From sequence record OR455461.1: DNA of 64,000 bases. One strand, written 5' to 3'. Shown here piece after piece: positions 3,463-31,366 of the stretch. Made by a program: the position numbers and the translations under genes. The notes beneath the pieces are model-generated. The model saw only the letters and a list, made by a program, of their open reading frames with translations. It searched no databases and was not told where the DNA came from. The stretch's first letter is position 1. The number at the start of each line of letters is the position of its first letter.

Positions 3463-5220
3463 ATGAGTGAACATAAGAAAAATAAAAAGTTGGTATCAAA
3501 TATAGTAGATGAAGATTCATACAAAGAAATAGCTGAATTAACAATTGATACTATTTCTGGAACATTAATGAAATCATTAGGTTATTATGGTTCTACTACA
3601 ATATTTGATGACGGTATTAGTAGATTTGTAACTAAAGACGGATATAATATTTTAAAGAATATTAGATTTCAAGACACTATTGCTGCAGCAATATTAAACT
3701 TCATTAAAGAAGTTTCATTATCACTAGTTAAAACTGTAGGTGATGGATCTACTTCTTCAGTAATTAATTCTCAAGCTATGTTTAAAGAAATTAATGCTAG
3801 ATTAAAAGAAAAAGATGATTTAGGTGGATTTTCTCGTAAAGAAATTTCAGATTCATTAAATAACATGAAAGATTTAATTACAGAAGGTTTAAAAGATAAA
3901 TCTATAGAAATTAATGAAGATAATTTCTATAAATTAAAAAATATTGCTACAGTATCAAATAATAATGATGAAAAATTAGGTGAAATGGTTTACGAAATTT
4001 TTTCTCAAATAGGTAAAAATGGTTTTATCACACCTGAAATTTCAGACAATGAAGAAGATTACTACTCATTAACTAAAGGTATTGAGAAAAATAATGCTCT
4101 ATTAGATAATAAATTAATTAATGATAAAGAAAATCATTCAGTTGATTTTAATAAACCTCATGTAGTAGTAGTTAATGATAAACTAAAAGAAGAAGACATT
4201 AAATGGTGTAGTGAGATTGTTACTTCATTACAACCTTTCTCTAGTAAAGGTTTAGTATTTGTTGCACCTAGCTTTTCTAAAGAGTTTATTAGTTGGGTAA
4301 AAGTATTATTAAATGCTAACCGTAATAATGGAGGTTTAAAAGCAGCTGAAGCTGAATTTGAATTATCTGTAGCATCTTACAGTAAAGACCCTGAAGAATT
4401 AGAAGATCTTGCAATATATGTAGGTTCAAATGTTATTGATATGACAATAGATCCAGAAGATTTTAAAAAGAATATTGTTGATAAATTAGAGGATTCTAGA
4501 AGTAATCCATTAAATTGGATGGAATTCCAACAACAATATGTAGGGCGTACTGAAAGATTTGTAATTGATTCTTTTAAAACTCAAATCATTGAAGGTCATG
4601 GTAATAAAACTGAAACTGGTTCTAGAAGATTGAAAGATCGTATTGCAGAAATAAATAACGAAATTAGTTATTTTGCAGATATGAATTCAGAACAAGCTAT
4701 TGGAGAGATTACTACATTACAACGTAGAGCTAATTCTTTAAATAGTGCAATTGCTAAATTATATGTGGGTGGTTCTTCTCAAGCAGAAAAAATCTCTCGT
4801 AAATACTTAGTGGAAGATTCAGTGCATGCTTCTAAATCAGCATTGAAATTTGGTTATGTATCTGGAGGAAATCTATCAGTAAATAAAGTTATCAAAGATA
4901 TTGATACAGAAAAATTATCTGATTTAGATAGATTAGTCCTAGACTTAATTGATATTTCTTCTCGTGAAGTATATCACAAAGTATTAGAAAACTTTAATAG
5001 ATTTAAAAAACCTGAAATAGAATCTATGACTCAGACTTGTATTAGTAAAGATGCAATTTATAATATTAAAACTGCCGAATATGAAGATGATGTAGAAACT
5101 GATATTATAAACTCTGTAGAAACAGATATTAAAATATTAGAAACTACAATTAGTATCATTGGTTTAATTTCATTAAGTAACCAATTCTTAACTAATTCTT
5201 TAATTATTCCACAAGATTAA
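3463..5220 (+). CDS. groEL: Phage chaperonin, GroEL-like (AR9 gp228 type)
   Basis: SLGYYG, VTKDGYNILKNI, VGDGSTSSV nucleotide-binding motifs and YVSGGNLS equatorial motif; 585 aa. Confidence 0.9.
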   Translation: MSEHKKNKKLVSNIVDEDSYKEIAELTIDTISGTLMKSLGYYGSTTIFDDGISRFVTKDGYNILKNIRFQDTIAAAILNFIKEVSLSLVKTVGDGSTSSVINSQAMFKEINARLKEKDDLGGFSRKEISDSLNNMKDLITEGLKDKSIEINEDNFYKLKNIATVSNNNDEKLGEMVYEIFSQIGKNGFITPEISDNEEDYYSLTKGIEKNNALLDNKLINDKENHSVDFNKPHVVVVNDKLKEEDIKWCSEIVTSLQPFSSKGLVFVAPSFSKEFISWVKVLLNANRNNGGLKAAEAEFELSVASYSKDPEELEDLAIYVGSNVIDMTIDPEDFKKNIVDKLEDSRSNPLNWMEFQQQYVGRTERFVIDSFKTQIIEGHGNKTETGSRRLKDRIAEINNEISYFADMNSEQAIGEITTLQRRANSLNSAIAKLYVGGSSQAEKISRKYLVEDSVHASKSALKFGYVSGGNLSVNKVIKDIDTEKLSDLDRLVLDLIDISSREVYHKVLENFNRFKKPEIESMTQTCISKDAIYNIKTAEYEDDVETDIINSVETDIKILETTISIIGLISLSNQFLTNSLIIPQD

Positions 5221-26706: not shown

Positions 26707-28965
26707 TCATTCAAATATAAAATTAGTTGAACCTGTATCATATACTTTATTTATATAAGTTTTATTTTTATCAATCTTATGTCTTATATAACTATCATTA
26801 CTTGTACCTTTTAAGAAAGTCTTTTCAATAGGTAATTCATTACCTACTTTATACATTCCAAATTTCTCAAATTTATAACATGTATATGAATCAGATTTTA
26901 CATTAAAAGTTAGACTTGGAAATATCTTTTTAATTTTAATTAAATCTGCGTCTGTATTTAAAAGTGAAATAAAATTATGTGATACATTAGTCTTATTATT
27001 AAAAGAAAATGCACAAATAATATAACCTTTATAATAAAGAGCGAAGAAGTCAGAATCTTTCCCATAAAAGTCTTCTGTTGAATGATTTTCAAAGAAATCT
27101 TTAAATGTAAAGAATCCCATAGATTTAATTTTTATATCACCATAATCTAATACAGAATAATCATCTTTAAATAGTAACAATTGATGTAAGAATTTAGCAT
27201 AATTCTTACCATCAATTCTTTTAGTTTCATTACGGATATCATCATCAAATAAATTAAGAAGATGGTACCCTTTTTCTTTAAGTTCATTGTATTTCTTAAG
27301 TTGATGATATTTAGCATTTATATCAGATTTAGTTTCATTGGAATGATATTTAACTCCATTAACTTCAATAGCCAATTTATACTTTTCAGAGAGTATATCA
27401 ATTTCTTTACCATCTAACAAATCTCTATTCTGTCTTTCTATATCAAAACCTAAATATTTCATTTCATCAGATACTTTTGATTCAGCAATAGAAGATTTTC
27501 CATTACTACATGACGGACAATTAATACCTTTTTCTATTAAATCATTTGCATTTATTTTAAATTCACCATGGTCTTTACATATTACTATTGATCTTTCATA
27601 TTTATCGTTAGGTCTAAATTTACTCATATTATATTTATCTTTACCATGTTTAATATTTGCAAGTGTTTGATATACTTCAGTCTTTTCTTCTTCAGTATAA
27701 TCAAAGTTATTAAGATTTTTAATCTTAGTATTAAGTGACTTTATACGTTTATACTCTTTTAATTCCTGAACAGAATATTTTCTCTTATTCTTTATTTTTG
27801 GTATTGATACTGATACTGAAACTATTTCTTTTTGATCTTCATTTGAATCTTTAACTTTATCTTTAACTTTATCTTTAACTTTATCTTTAACTTTATCTTT
27901 AATATTATCCTTAACTTTATCAATATCAAAATTATTAGAGATTTCTCTTTCTATATTTTCTTTCTTCATATTCTTTTTAATTTTCGGTGTTTTCTTTATA
28001 CCTTTAAGTAATTTCTCAGTTTCTTCTTCACGTTTCTTTTTATTATTCTCTACGATTTTTTCCCAGTCTTTATCTATACTAAGTTTTTCTTCTTCACATT
28101 TAGGACAAGCTAATTTTTTATCAAATAACATTTCGTGTATAGATGTTTTAAATTCACCATGTTTTTCACATATAATTGGTTGAATATCTTTTTCGTTAAT
28201 AGGTCTAAATTTAGAAAAATCATAGTTTGTATTATTAGCTTTATTTAGAGCTAAATCATAAATATGGTTTTTCTCATCTTCTGTATAATCTTTAGTCAAT
28301 TCTAAAAATAAATCAGGATCTATGTCTTTTAAATTATTAAAGATATTTTCAGTAGTTGCAACTTCTCCATCTTTCTTACAACCTGGACAGCCATCAAGAT
28401 TATTTATAAGAAAATTTTTAACTGAACTTTTAAAGCTACCATGTTTTTCACAGACTATATTTTGTTTAGTATTTATACTGTTCGGTTTAAAATTAGATAC
28501 ATCATAAGGAGAATATAGTCCATATTTAGCTATTGTAATATTATAGAAGAATAAATATTTTTCTTCTTTACTTTTATTCTTTAAATATCTAACTTTATCT
28601 TTCATTTTAGTAGAGCTATTTAAGAAAAATGTATAAGGTTCTAAAAATTCATTAGGATCTTCTACCATAGGAGATTCAAGTCGCTTAGTTCTTTCTTTAT
28701 TTTTTAAAAATTTCTCAGCGTTAACTTTATTTTCATTTTCTCCTGATTCAATTATTCTTAAACAGCTTTCAAAATAATTATCGAACCATTCTTTACTTTT
28801 AGTATATTTAATCATTCTTATTTTAAAATCTTCAGATATTTTTCCTTTATATGTTACTTTTACTTTATCTTCATTTATTTGATAATCTTTATCATTATCT
28901 ATATTAAATGTATAGTCATTACCTAATTTTTCTTTAAAGCTTTCTCTTAATTTTTTACCTAACAT
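26707..28965 (-). CDS. Free-standing homing-type endonuclease with repeated CxKHGxF...CxxC zinc modules and a C-terminal PD-(D/E)XK/Vsr-like domain
   Basis: Three CEKHG/CKDHG...CPxC repeats; EIDILSEKYKLAIEVNGVKYHS nuclease motif. Confidence 0.7.
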   Translation of the reverse strand: MLGKKLRESFKEKLGNDYTFNIDNDKDYQINEDKVKVTYKGKISEDFKIRMIKYTKSKEWFDNYFESCLRIIESGENENKVNAEKFLKNKERTKRLESPMVEDPNEFLEPYTFFLNSSTKMKDKVRYLKNKSKEEKYLFFYNITIAKYGLYSPYDVSNFKPNSINTKQNIVCEKHGSFKSSVKNFLINNLDGCPGCKKDGEVATTENIFNNLKDIDPDLFLELTKDYTEDEKNHIYDLALNKANNTNYDFSKFRPINEKDIQPIICEKHGEFKTSIHEMLFDKKLACPKCEEEKLSIDKDWEKIVENNKKKREEETEKLLKGIKKTPKIKKNMKKENIEREISNNFDIDKVKDNIKDKVKDKVKDKVKDKVKDSNEDQKEIVSVSVSIPKIKNKRKYSVQELKEYKRIKSLNTKIKNLNNFDYTEEEKTEVYQTLANIKHGKDKYNMSKFRPNDKYERSIVICKDHGEFKINANDLIEKGINCPSCSNGKSSIAESKVSDEMKYLGFDIERQNRDLLDGKEIDILSEKYKLAIEVNGVKYHSNETKSDINAKYHQLKKYNELKEKGYHLLNLFDDDIRNETKRIDGKNYAKFLHQLLLFKDDYSVLDYGDIKIKSMGFFTFKDFFENHSTEDFYGKDSDFFALYYKGYIICAFSFNNKTNVSHNFISLLNTDADLIKIKKIFPSLTFNVKSDSYTCYKFEKFGMYKVGNELPIEKTFLKGTSNDSYIRHKIDKNKTYINKVYDTGSTNFIFE
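27847..27921. repeat. 12-bp in-frame tandem repeat (KDKV units), about 6 copies
   Basis: ATCTTTAACTTT x4 perfect plus 2 degenerate copies. Confidence 0.9.
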
Positions 28966-29053
28966 ATCATGTTCATCTCCATATTATAATATTAAGATTA
29001 TATTTTAATAATCTCAAATTTATAATATATATTTAAAACGTAAAATAAAATAA

Positions 29054-29083
29054 TCCCAATATCTAATTTAATAGATATTGGGA
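29054..29083 (-). terminator. Terminator hairpin (dispersed family) closing the tRNA-like/ncRNA transcript
   Basis: TCCCAATATCTA/TAGATATTGGGA stem with a U-rich tail on the minus strand. Confidence 0.75.
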
Positions 29084-29084
29084 A

Positions 29085-29519
29085 ATATGTATAAATTAAC
29101 CCTAACCTCTTCGACTAATTCAAAATCAATCTGTAGGTTAGGGTTAATGTTACTTTTACGAGAAAAGTATAAAGTTGCTTTAATAATTTTTTATATCCTA
29201 TAAAGCATAAGAAGGATTAAAGAAACCAATATATGCATGGAACATATTAGGAATCTTATAGTGATATTTTAATAGTCTAGTTTTTCTTATATTAGGAACT
29301 AAAACTAGAAAACCTAAAGTGTATTAAAGTCAGATACTTATCACAAATTAATGTAAAATAAGTCCTCTTTAATACTTCTTTTTTAATACTTTTTTACAAC
29401 TAAAGATATGCCTTAACTTTAGTTGAATCTAATAAATTAAGTTTGGCATATCACTTAATTTATATTTTATTTATAGCAGGTCTGCAGCCAAGCTATAAGG
29501 ATGATTAATCCTATAGGGT
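29085..29519 (-). ncRNA. Candidate structured RNA (about 430 nt) directly 3' of a tRNA-like gene
   Basis: Dense hairpins, a kissing-loop pair and a long-range closing helix; no ORF. Confidence 0.5.
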
Positions 29520-29604
29520 TGTTCCTAATGAGATTCGAACTCATAACCTACAGATAAATTTTAATTCATAAATCTGTACGCTCTGACCATTGAGCTATAG
29601 GAAC
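29520..29604 (-). tRNA. tRNA-like gene with an expanded anticodon loop (no assignable anticodon; Ile-UAU-like if 11 nt are ignored)
   Basis: Acceptor GUUCCUA/UAGGAAC, D arm GCUC-AAUGGUCA-GAGC, T arm AUGAG-UUCGAAU-CUCAU; anticodon stem UACAGAU/AUCUGUA closes a 16-nt loop; no encoded CCA. Confidence 0.7.
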
Positions 29605-29964
29605 ATAGAAATTTAAAAAAAAATTAAAAGAGTACATTTATCATCTATGCACTCTTTTAAGTAAATAAATATATAATAATATCTATTAATTTTTAATTAT
29701 ACGTAAGGAGGCGTATGGATTTCTATTTAAAACCATGACATATTAAAAATAGAAACAAGAGAAACCAAAGAAACATTTTTAAACCAACAACGAGTGACAA
29801 AGTAAGTTATAATAGAATTTAATCTATTATATTTTTTAGTTAAATCAAAAACTAAAAAAAATCTATAATAATTTGACGAGAATCATTATAGATTTATACT
29901 ATATAGTTAATTAATATTTTTAAATAAAATTTTTTTAATAAATAGGAATTTTAGACCAAAAAAA

Positions 29965-30034
29965 AGCTTATCCGAGGGATCGAACCCCGGACACATGATG
30001 AAAATCATTGCTCTACCAACTGAGCTAGATAAAC
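29965..30034 (-). tRNA. tRNA-like gene with a 4-nt anticodon loop
   Basis: Acceptor GUUUAUC/GAUAAGC, D arm GCUC-AGUUGGUA-GAGC, T arm CGGGG-UUCGAUC-CCUCG; anticodon arm AUGAU-UUUC-AUCAU; no encoded CCA. Confidence 0.7.
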
Positions 30035-30081
30035 TTTCTTCATTATTATAATATATGTTTATATTTCACTATATTACGCTT

Positions 30082-30131
30082 TTAATAAATATAATCTTCT
30101 ATATCAATTTCATTTTGTTTAATTGTCATAT
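30082..30131 (-). repeat. Displaced duplicate of the RNAP beta' gene 3' end (MTIKQNEIDIEDYIY*)
   Basis: Matches 31402-31451 except for three synonymous third-position changes. Confidence 0.85.
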
Positions 30132-31366
30132 ATTCCTGAATTATGATAATACAATTTTCTTTTATTATCAAAAATTTTCATGGGTTCTTTGATTTCTATT
30201 TTATCTTTCATTTTTAAATAATGACTATATTTCATATTATCTAAAGAATTTGTTTTTACTTCTTTTTTGATAATATTTTCTAATTTTTCTTTTAAATTAT
30301 AATTTTCATTCTCATATAAAAATACAGTAGAAAATTTATTTTCTAAAAGAAATAGAGCTTTTTCTTGATGATAATATTTATCTTTAAATATTTCTGAATG
30401 CCAGTAAGCTCCATTACATTCGATAGCTATTTTTTCTTTAATATCATCAATATATAAAATTATATCAATTTCTCTTTTACCAATAAATTTATTATTTTCA
30501 ATATGATAACTATAATTTTCGTTGTCTAAAATTTCTTTTAATTCATCCAATACATTAATTTCAAATAATGAACGTTGTTTAGAATTACATTTACAACCTC
30601 TAGGACGATATCTATCATAATTTATATAATCTTTAAAAATAGTATTACATTTATTACATCTAAATGAATATATAAATTCTGAATTTATACCTTTAAATTC
30701 ATCATAAGTGTTTAAAATGTCTATATCATATTTTTTTAATAAATTCTTTAAATTATAATAAGTTTTATTTTTTCTAATTTTATTTAATTTTTCTTTTATG
30801 GTGTCATTTTTCATAGGATTGTCTACACCATATCTATTGATAAAAGATTCTTTTATTATATTTGACATATTAGGTATTTCATAAATATTATTAGCATCAA
30901 ATTTATTTTTTATTTGATCTTTAATATTTATGAAATTCCCATTATTTTTTAAAGTATTATGTGATTTAGAAGATATTACTTTATTTTTCATAGGATTGTC
31001 TACACCATATTTATCAATAAAAGCTTTCTTTCTTTTAATATTAAAATCTTCTATTTTATTCATATTGCTTGTTCCATACTTATCTTTTAAAGTTTTTCTT
31101 CCTTTTTCATATTTTTCAGGATCTTTCATAGAACAACTTCTAGAACAATATACTCCTAATTTATGTTTATTTTTTACAAATTTAACTTTATTTTTTCTAC
31201 AATACTTACAGTAAATTACAGAATTTATATCATTTCTTATATAGTACATTCTTTCAGATAAATTTACATCTTTAAATTCATTTAAAAAATCAGTGTATTT
31301 AATAATATCATTTTTATATTTATTTAAAGCAGGTCCTTTTATTTTCTTAATTTGTTCTAATTGCAT
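30119..31366 (-). CDS. Free-standing homing endonuclease (YGVDNPMK repeats, CxxC, C-terminal PD-(D/E)XK-like domain)
   Basis: YGTSN/YGVDNPMKN repeats, CKYC..C..C and CNKC..CKC motifs, EIDIIL..IAIECNGAYWHS; own ATATATTAT promoter at about 31390. Confidence 0.75.
   Translation of the reverse strand: MQLEQIKKIKGPALNKYKNDIIKYTDFLNEFKDVNLSERMYYIRNDINSVIYCKYCRKNKVKFVKNKHKLGVYCSRSCSMKDPEKYEKGRKTLKDKYGTSNMNKIEDFNIKRKKAFIDKYGVDNPMKNKVISSKSHNTLKNNGNFINIKDQIKNKFDANNIYEIPNMSNIIKESFINRYGVDNPMKNDTIKEKLNKIRKNKTYYNLKNLLKKYDIDILNTYDEFKGINSEFIYSFRCNKCNTIFKDYINYDRYRPRGCKCNSKQRSLFEINVLDELKEILDNENYSYHIENNKFIGKREIDIILYIDDIKEKIAIECNGAYWHSEIFKDKYYHQEKALFLLENKFSTVFLYENENYNLKEKLENIIKKEVKTNSLDNMKYSHYLKMKDKIEIKEPMKIFDNKRKLYYHNSGIYDN

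Follow-up and report, generated by a model that had tools for sequence, protein, structure and literature searches.

ROOL and GOLLD are structured RNAs carried by phages and prophages near tRNA genes, and both are very abundant and of unknown function (Weinberg 2009, 2017). GOLLD env-38 is located downstream of a tRNA-Met gene, and some of these RNAs contain an internal tRNA. In the cryo-electron microscopy structures of ROOL and GOLLD, conserved kissing loops, particularly palindromic ones, are intermolecular contacts, and one contact that had first been read as intramolecular was then shown to lie between molecules (10.1101/2024.12.08.627333). Staphylococcus phage K produces lnc001, an abundant non-coding RNA (ncRNA) of ~600 nt that directly follows a tRNA gene on the same strand and ends at a terminator, and its authors compare it with ROOL and GOLLD (PMC9241854). 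In the phi29 phage RNA pRNA, two complementary loops pair between molecules to form rings (PMC4201828). Here, we describe a tRNA-linked RNA unit around positions 29085-29519 of a 64,000-nt stretch of DNA (the window), which shows 100% identity to OR455461.1 of Staphylococcus phage AH12, an AR9-like jumbo phage with a genome of 264.7 kb and ~24% G+C. All coordinates are those of the window; as the RNA comes from the minus strand, its 5'-to-3' direction follows decreasing numbers.

The AH12 RNA resembles ROOL and GOLLD in that it is fused to a tRNA-like element, adjoins a tRNA-Asn gene in five related phages, and reaches a depth of 328 in an RNA library (versus 12.9 for neighbouring sequence). 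It differs from them in size (a core of ~245 nt plus an 85-nt tRNA-like domain, compared with 580-800 nt), in forming a row of hairpins with no multistem junctions seen, in that its tRNA mimic does not decode, and in being known only from Staphylococcus jumbo phages. Neither the ROOL model, which has six multistem junctions plus three pseudoknots, nor the GOLLD model gave a match at E-values up to 10 in AH12 and up to 5 in SA1 and MarsHill. The arrangement of lnc001 is also similar, but lnc001 gave no match to the covariance model of our unit (R1, see below) and is thus not homologous; in addition, phage K belongs to the Herelleviridae, and the tRNA-Met upstream of lnc001 is normal. At the 3' end of lnc001 (L252 633-769, minus strand), an Rfam DUF3800-I motif was found just under the threshold (43.4 vs 44.2 bits). 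The complementary loops of phi29 pRNA form a pairing of only 4 nt in an RNA of ~120-174 nt that sits on the portal of small podoviruses, whereas the AH12 RNA has no link to packaging; Rfam yielded no pRNA match in AH12, although complementary loops are present. tRNA mimics are also known as processing handles, e.g. the mascRNA of MALAT1, the tRNA-miRNA (microRNA) transcripts of MHV68, and the stable RNAs 'species 1 and 2' in the tRNA cluster of phage T4; in such RNAs, a tRNA or its mimic is co-transcribed with another RNA, and tRNA-processing enzymes define the ends. These systems either carry the mimic 3'-terminally, as in MALAT1, or consist of eukaryotic Pol III units, whereas the AH12 mimic is at the 5' end and is apparently still attached in many molecules.

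The RNA unit and its conservation

The unit very probably represents a real, expressed, and previously undescribed RNA family of Staphylococcus jumbo phages. It is present as a single, syntenic copy in all ten such phages sequenced, namely AH12, Machias, PB50, MarsHill, Madawaska, SA1, LY01, PALS_2, S6, and DC4, and no published description of this RNA was found in the literature searched. An earlier annotation made by a model from the letters alone (the sequence-only reading) had proposed a highly structured RNA at 29085-29519, i.e. directly downstream of the first tRNA-like element on the minus strand. This region is the body of a single ncRNA of ~550 nt (minus strand, ~29606 to ~29055), which comprises a tRNA-like domain at the 5' end, six hairpins that make up a conserved core (H1-H6; 29511-29268), and a clade-specific 3' extension with two final hairpins, the second being a terminator. 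The proposed high degree of structure was borne out, as the 536-nt stretch 29075-29610 folds far better than its shuffled versions (z = -5.9). The parts of the unit are as follows.

29520-29604, minus strand: tRNA-like 5' domain with intact acceptor, D, and T arms (60 bits against the Rfam tRNA model)
29513-29519, minus strand: variable linker of 6-7 nt located 3' of the discriminator base (alignment and sequences)
29499-29511, minus strand: H1, hairpin of 4-5 bp with the loop UAAUC, identical in the ten phages and containing the 8-nt palindrome GAUUAAUC
29471-29498, minus strand: H2, hairpin with a stem of 8-10 bp and an unvarying 8-nt loop, GCUGCAGA (29488-29481), that includes the 6-nt palindrome CUGCAG; 6 compensatory pairs
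29432-29463, minus strand: H3, hairpin with a stem of 10-11 bp and a 12-nt loop with AUAUGCC at 29451-29445; loop core invariant; 5 compensatory pairs
29397-29425, minus strand: H4, hairpin with a stem of 9 bp and an 11-nt loop with GGCAUAU at 29412-29406; loop invariant; 4 compensatory pairs
29321-29375, minus strand: H5, hairpin with a conserved asymmetric internal loop (RNAalifold on the alignment)
29268-29309, minus strand: H6, invariant 9-bp stem (UCUAGUUUU/AAAACUAGA) with a variable loop, followed by a conserved tail (alignment and RNAalifold)
29149-29267, minus strand: 3' extension, found only in AH12, Machias, and PB50 and holding the partner (29220-29193) of a 13-nt pairing
29095-29148, minus strand: T1, hairpin of 12-14 bp with a 28-nt loop, in which 29140-29117 is complementary to the anticodon arm (29566-29544)
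29054-29083, minus strand: T2, intrinsic terminator consisting of a 12-bp hairpin and a U-rich run (terminator scan; the 568-nt contig of run X5 stops at 29057)

Across the ten phages, 97.2% of the alignment cells in the H1-H4 stems are paired, and 15 compensatory pairs are distributed among H2, H3, and H4 as listed above. None of 500 shuffles was as good, and sliding one partner by 1-3 columns left only 27-40% pairing. With a further eight in the cloverleaf of the tRNA-like domain, the compensatory pairs number 23 in total. The two hairpins singled out in the sequence-only reading, H3 and H4, are thus real, and the check on homologues that it had called for showed covarying stems as well as H3/H4 loop complementarity kept in all ten phages. 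H1, all four loops of H1-H4, and the linkers are unvarying while the stems of H2-H4 covary. From H3 through the end of H4, not a single insertion or deletion was found among the ten phages. A divergent H2 variant from a tick RNA run has both stem strands altered and the palindrome unaltered. The G.U pairs in H2 and H3 would become A.C mismatches on the opposite strand, and R1, a covariance model of H1-H4, scored 139 bits on the minus strand versus at most 20 bits on the plus strand; the unit is therefore an RNA from the minus strand. These data show that the fold is under selection as an RNA on this strand and that its loops are more strongly constrained than its stems. A coding role was rejected: within 29085-29519, just one open reading frame (ORF) reaches 40 aa, a plus-strand TTG frame of 41 aa at 29078-29203, and insertions among the relatives are not multiples of three.

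In the downstream half of the core, the inner stem of H5 changes from ACUUAU/AUAAGU to ACUCAU/AUGAGU in SA1, and H5 is degenerate in LY01 and absent from Madawaska. The H6 hairpin proper occupies 29309-29276, and its conserved tail, CUAUUAAA, ends at 29268, which is the end of the core common to all phages and the position at which the blastn match to the distant clade begins. An insertion-tolerant site between H4 and H5 holds 0 to ~110 nt among the phages, the large insertions being of 40-110 nt. A 90-nt insertion at this site (window 29378/29390) is present in Machias (L002 ~3480-3572) and PB50 and also in the 328x contig of a tick metatranscriptome, and Madawaska has a 15-nt remnant of it without H5.

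ARAGORN and Rfam identified only two RNA genes in the window, i.e. the tRNA-like elements at 29520-29604 and 29965-30034 on the minus strand, and ARAGORN named no anticodon for either. The first element keeps UUCRA in the T loop and GG in the D loop, and its cloverleaf is 98.3% paired across nine phages, with the eight compensatory pairs located in the acceptor, anticodon, and T stems. The anticodon arm in AH12 has a stem of 5-6 bp and a loop of 18-20 nt; Machias and PB50 have a 37-nt loop instead, the MarsHill group one of 5 nt and SA1 one of 6 or 8 nt, and a length of 7 nt never occurs. The cloverleaf of a tRNA is thus present, and the 7-nt anticodon loop with U33 and a 3-nt anticodon that mark a decoding tRNA are not. 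As the loop never has 7 nt, the element cannot decode, and the retention of the cloverleaf with an anticodon loop of variable length indicates selection on tRNA shape, not on decoding. The element retains the acceptor stem, T arm, and D/T elbow, which serve RNase P and RNase Z as recognition features. CCA at positions 74-76 is encoded in none of the phages, and a search for a phage-encoded CCA-adding enzyme identified none; similarly, G3:U70 occurs in none of the phages, the acceptor stem carrying U3-A70 instead. A preprint on MarsHill, Madawaska, and Machias describes degenerating pseudo-tRNAs and reports no tRNA in MarsHill. The element is nevertheless present in MarsHill, where it scores 36.7 bits with the tRNA model. 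The family corrects the published view that these phages hold only decaying pseudo-tRNAs: this 'pseudo-tRNA' is a conserved structural domain, in MarsHill as in the others.

Five relatives, Machias, PB50, Madawaska, PALS_2, and S6, have a normal-looking tRNA-Asn (GUU) gene that ends 7-10 nt short of the tRNA-like domain, on its upstream side (L002 3811-3882, L003 2314-2385, L005 2707-2779, L008 2852-2924, and L010 1352-1424); AH12, MarsHill, LY01, and SA1 lack it. The phages can do without the genuine tRNA but not without its mimic. In MarsHill, the annotated 36-aa 'hypothetical protein' CPT_MarsHill_163 (L004 2780-2890, plus strand) runs antisense to this domain and probably does not represent a gene.

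In all nine relatives, the unit is intergenic, with the virion RNA polymerase beta' gene on one side and a homing-endonuclease-like gene (650-750 aa) on the other. The product of the latter gene shares only 33-38% identity between clades, and the tRNA-like element and the next ~250 nt align with long invariant blocks. R1 found exactly one copy per jumbo-phage record at 130-150 bits in the seven records scanned whole. A DNA search of the whole AH12 record likewise recovered the unit alone, and R1 detected no second copy in the relatives. With Bacillus phages AR9 and vB_BpuM-BpSp and Staphylococcus phage K, R1 gave nothing below E = 0.2, and a scan of IMG/VR with two patterns built from invariant motifs returned 0 matches. 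A looser pattern gave at least 120 matches in each of the metagenome and genome collections searched; none of the matches listed carried the other motifs, as expected of chance matches, and absence beyond Staphylococcus phages is not established by this search. Rfam 15, applied with gathering thresholds to the whole window and with permissive settings to AH12, SA1, and MarsHill, matched only tRNA, and the Rfam check suggested in the sequence-only reading thus returned no known family beyond it.

Expression was assessed using assembled contigs of public runs, which were compared over a 1.8-kb stretch around the unit. Four contigs cover the unit.

29057-29606: 568-nt contig, depth 10.8, run X5 (type guessed as RNA)
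29249-29533: 366-nt contig, depth 328, run X7 (rRNA-depleted tick metatranscriptome)
29262-29555: 335-nt contig, depth 9.6, run X6 (oligo-dT tick metatranscriptome)
29362-29594: 233-nt contig, depth 54.7, run X8 (type guessed as RNA)

The X5 contig starts 2 nt before the tRNA-like domain and runs as far as the foot of terminator T2. In X7, the sole other contig in the 1.8-kb stretch has a depth of 12.9, i.e. 25-fold lower, and this depth gap within one library is the only one of these observations that is hard to explain by DNA carry-over. The most abundant part of the RNA coincides with the conserved core. X6 also contains a MarsHill-like variant, and in the variants found in the library runs, the two strands of H2 change together and the loop cores are untouched. 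All four contigs span the 29520/29519 junction of the tRNA-like domain and the core, and therefore at least part of the RNA keeps the tRNA-like domain attached. We read these data as an abundant, stable RNA to which the tRNA-like domain is still attached in many molecules and whose 5' end fits cleavage by RNase P. The proposal of a functional ncRNA is thus well supported by single-copy synteny in ten phages, covarying stems, invariant loops, and library contigs confined to the unit.

Proposed loop contacts and competing readings

On balance, the unit is probably a stable, tRNA-linked phage RNA, with the tRNA-like domain as its handle and the invariant loops as RNA-RNA contact sites, possibly between molecules. 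The tRNA-like domain would serve as a handle for maturation and stability: RNase P would cleave at its 5' end, and exonucleases would then be kept off the RNA by the pairing of that end together with the terminator hairpins. The H3 loop sequence AUAUGCC and the H4 loop sequence GGCAUAU are complementary over 7 bp and identical in all ten phages, except for one G.U pair in SA1; among random loops of the same two sizes, 0.4-0.8% would show such a 7-nt match. The kissing interaction had originally been put at 7-8 bp. The eighth G varies (A in PB50, U or C in further phages), and its partner C closes the H4 stem, so that seven of these pairs stand as a conserved loop-loop helix and the eighth does not. 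The palindrome CUGCAG in the H2 loop is unable to pair inside its own 8-nt loop. H3 and H4 are unbroken helices of 9-11 bp joined by 6 nt, and by our estimate of the geometry, intramolecular kissing between them would need a bend much sharper than those in known kissing complexes, which an intermolecular interaction would not.

The H3-H4 pairing and the H2 palindrome may lock the fold or, somewhat more likely, join copies into dimers or larger assemblies, because H3 and H4 are perfect neighbouring hairpins joined by only 6 nt. Assembly of this kind is known from ROOL, GOLLD, and phi29 pRNA. The signature of ROOL/GOLLD-type homo-oligomers, a palindromic invariant loop together with a complementary invariant loop pair, is present here at the sequence level only. 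The invariant loops most likely make RNA-RNA contacts. We propose more tentatively, as a possibility short of probable, that the RNA may self-assemble into an RNA-only particle, head-to-tail via H3-H4 and symmetrically via the H2 palindrome and perhaps H1, giving a closed dimer, ring, or cage that would display the tRNA-like domains. If this is true, ROOL and GOLLD would be joined by a third class of phage 'ornate' RNA assembly, unrelated to them and much smaller, located in a lytic jumbo phage of a pathogen that is open to culture and genetic manipulation. ROOL/GOLLD-type RNAs come mostly from metagenomes or from prophages that are hard to handle, whereas the AH12 family is compact (~330 nt conserved) and is found in cultivable lytic Staphylococcus phages. 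The family also contains natural experiments, i.e. the loss of H5 in one phage, insertions at one site, and a swapped 3' domain, and its contact loops are clearly marked.

Several points weigh against this reading. The family has only ten members in about five distinct lineages, and one phage does without H5. Covariation lends no support to pairing in the loop-loop helix or in H1, both of which are invariant, and this conservation might just as well reflect protein binding. By chance, ~9% of 8-nt loops would hold a 6-nt palindrome, and the case against an intramolecular kissing pair is a geometric estimate, not a computation. The expression data consist of assembled contigs, which carry no strand, ends, or time course; X5 and X8 are only guessed to be RNA, gaps in coverage prove nothing, and DNA may occur in RNA libraries. 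In addition, any promoter of the unit is putative, and a terminator-like hairpin (29658-29627) and its U-run end a few bases before the tRNA-like 5' end.

A serious though less favoured possibility is that the RNA is a monomeric scaffold in which H3-H4 is an intramolecular tertiary contact and the other invariant loops bind a phage or host protein, so that it sequesters, guides, or regulates a partner. Recognition sites usually show up as invariant loops on covarying stems, kissing loops within one molecule are frequent among riboswitches and viral RNAs, and the unit always adjoins the conserved homing-endonuclease-like gene. Yet such a partner is hypothetical, the neighbouring gene is served by an early-type promoter of its own behind a terminator, and the unbroken H3 and H4 stems with their 6-nt joint would presumably have to bend sharply.

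The processing model of the sequence-only reading, in which the tRNA-like module exists only for excision by RNase P and RNase Z to free a ~250-430 nt ncRNA with its 5' end at 29519, appears rather unlikely. It agrees with the covariation-backed conservation of the acceptor stem, T arm, and D/T elbow, and the lack of an encoded CCA in any of the phages means that RNase Z would not be blocked, as is established for the Bacillus enzyme. The start of the X5 contig 2 nt upstream of the module makes the RNase P part of the proposal, i.e. the 5' end, plausible. Release of the downstream RNA fared less well: four of the four contigs, including the 328x one, span 29520/29519, and joined molecules must therefore be plentiful.

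The long-range pairings of the 3' extension underlie another proposal, namely a switch in which the extension pairs with the anticodon arm and with the linker/H1 segment in competition with the cloverleaf, H1, and T1, which would set processing or read-through. The sequence 29267-29085 is common only to AH12, Machias, and PB50, which are ~94% identical here, and the other seven phages have a different 3' domain with just one, small terminator hairpin. Enlargement of the anticodon loop and of the T1 loop is likewise confined to this clade, and the foot pair of T1 shows a compensatory change from U-A to A-U in Machias. The reported 12-nt complement (29140-29129 with 29555-29544) is present and extends to ~22 of 24 nt (29140-29117 with 29566-29544), forming a duplex of -24.1 kcal/mol in AH12 compared with -11.5 +/- 2.7 kcal/mol for shuffles (none of 500 equally good). 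The complementarity persists in Machias and PB50 with partly different letters (5 of 500 shuffles as good), and a manual reading of the Machias sequences gave 12+3+5 bp. This element is thus beyond chance and confined to one clade: tests in MarsHill and SA1 revealed no such complementarity (412 and 103 of 500 shuffles as good, respectively). The 13-nt pairing was also found where it had been placed, split between 29517-29505 and 29220-29214 plus 29202-29197. For the fixed 13-mer, 3 of 2000 shuffles were as good, and the pairing is nevertheless not beyond chance because ~400 possible segments must be allowed for; it is also absent from the MarsHill/SA1 phages.

The 13-nt pairing competes with the invariant hairpin H1 and is nested in, and collinear with, the arm/T1 pairing. 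This nested arrangement, the arm/T1 duplex far above shuffles in all three carriers, and the complementarity that Machias keeps with different letters, with both loops enlarged only in that clade, would suit a switch. Against this, the other seven phages, with an anticodon loop of 5-8 nt and a small T1 loop, lack the complementarity, the three carriers are near-identical, the minimum-free-energy fold uses neither long-range pairing, and the pattern could also be a DNA-level inverted duplication. A switch is hence improbable, and as a function of the whole family it had to be given up, being limited to one clade at most. A clade-specific 5'-3' clamp or alternative fold is possible for AH12, Machias, and PB50, and this would be no explanation for the whole family.

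Two further explanations are very unlikely. That the locus is merely a decaying tRNA cluster with an AT-rich spacer, in line with the pseudo-tRNAs of the published genome paper and with a tRNA-Asn gene in only some phages, is already contradicted by the covariation (23 compensatory pairs) and also by the invariant loops, the strict single-copy synteny beside a protein only 33-38% identical, the presence of the element in MarsHill, and a library depth 25 times that of its neighbour. That it is a DNA-level element (an origin of replication, packaging site, or endonuclease target), as its invariant blocks, inverted repeats, and position between two homing-endonuclease-like genes might suggest, is hardly compatible with G.U pairs and R1 scores that fit one strand, with a tRNA-like domain and a terminator, or with over-representation in RNA libraries.

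Rejected identities and neighbouring features

The combination of a tRNA-like module with other structured domains recalls tmRNA and the bacterial Y RNA YrlA, both of which were rejected. No tmRNA was identified by ARAGORN or Rfam, there is no G3:U70 pair or tag reading frame, and the AH12 cloverleaf closes on itself, not via both RNA ends as in tmRNA. For YrlA, Rfam gave no match, and no Ro60/TROVE protein was found in AH12, MarsHill, or SA1 (control genomes were positive). Membership in the group I intron/phage mini-intron family, which has ~28 other copies in the genome, was rejected because the unit is intergenic, the DNA search finds the unit alone, and Rfam returns nothing. A role as a template or primer for the retron-like reverse transcriptase was also rejected, as its gene is 51-53 kb distant in AH12 and MarsHill.

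Upstream of the unit, the leader at 29612-29725 (minus strand) contains a hairpin with a CCUCC loop that has an anti-Shine-Dalgarno look, and its sequence is conserved in nine of the ten phages. A sigma-70-like site (TAGAAA-18-TATAAT) is located in the same leader, and positions 29607-29715 are covered by no contig of the RNA libraries. The second tRNA-like element (29965-30034, minus strand) has a 5-bp anticodon stem with a 4-nt loop and is confined to AH12, Machias, and PB50. Just upstream of this element is the motif of an AR9-type early promoter, TATATTAT (30048-30055); a U run follows the element, and its body resembles a mycobacteriophage tRNA-Lys (87% over 57 nt).

Further upstream, a 415-aa ORF (30119-31366, minus strand) is unannotated in the AH12 record, absent at this position in the relatives, and matches phrog_3339 (4e-26) and DUF7487; it looks like a recent insertion of a free-standing homing endonuclease gene. 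The 752-aa homing-endonuclease-like gene downstream of the unit (26707-28965, minus strand) matches phrog_3339 and phrog_559 and, weakly, PDB 3r3p 'Mobile intron protein'. Unlike typical mobile endonuclease genes, it occupies the same place in all ten phages, and it has its own TATATTAT promoter at 29022-29029.

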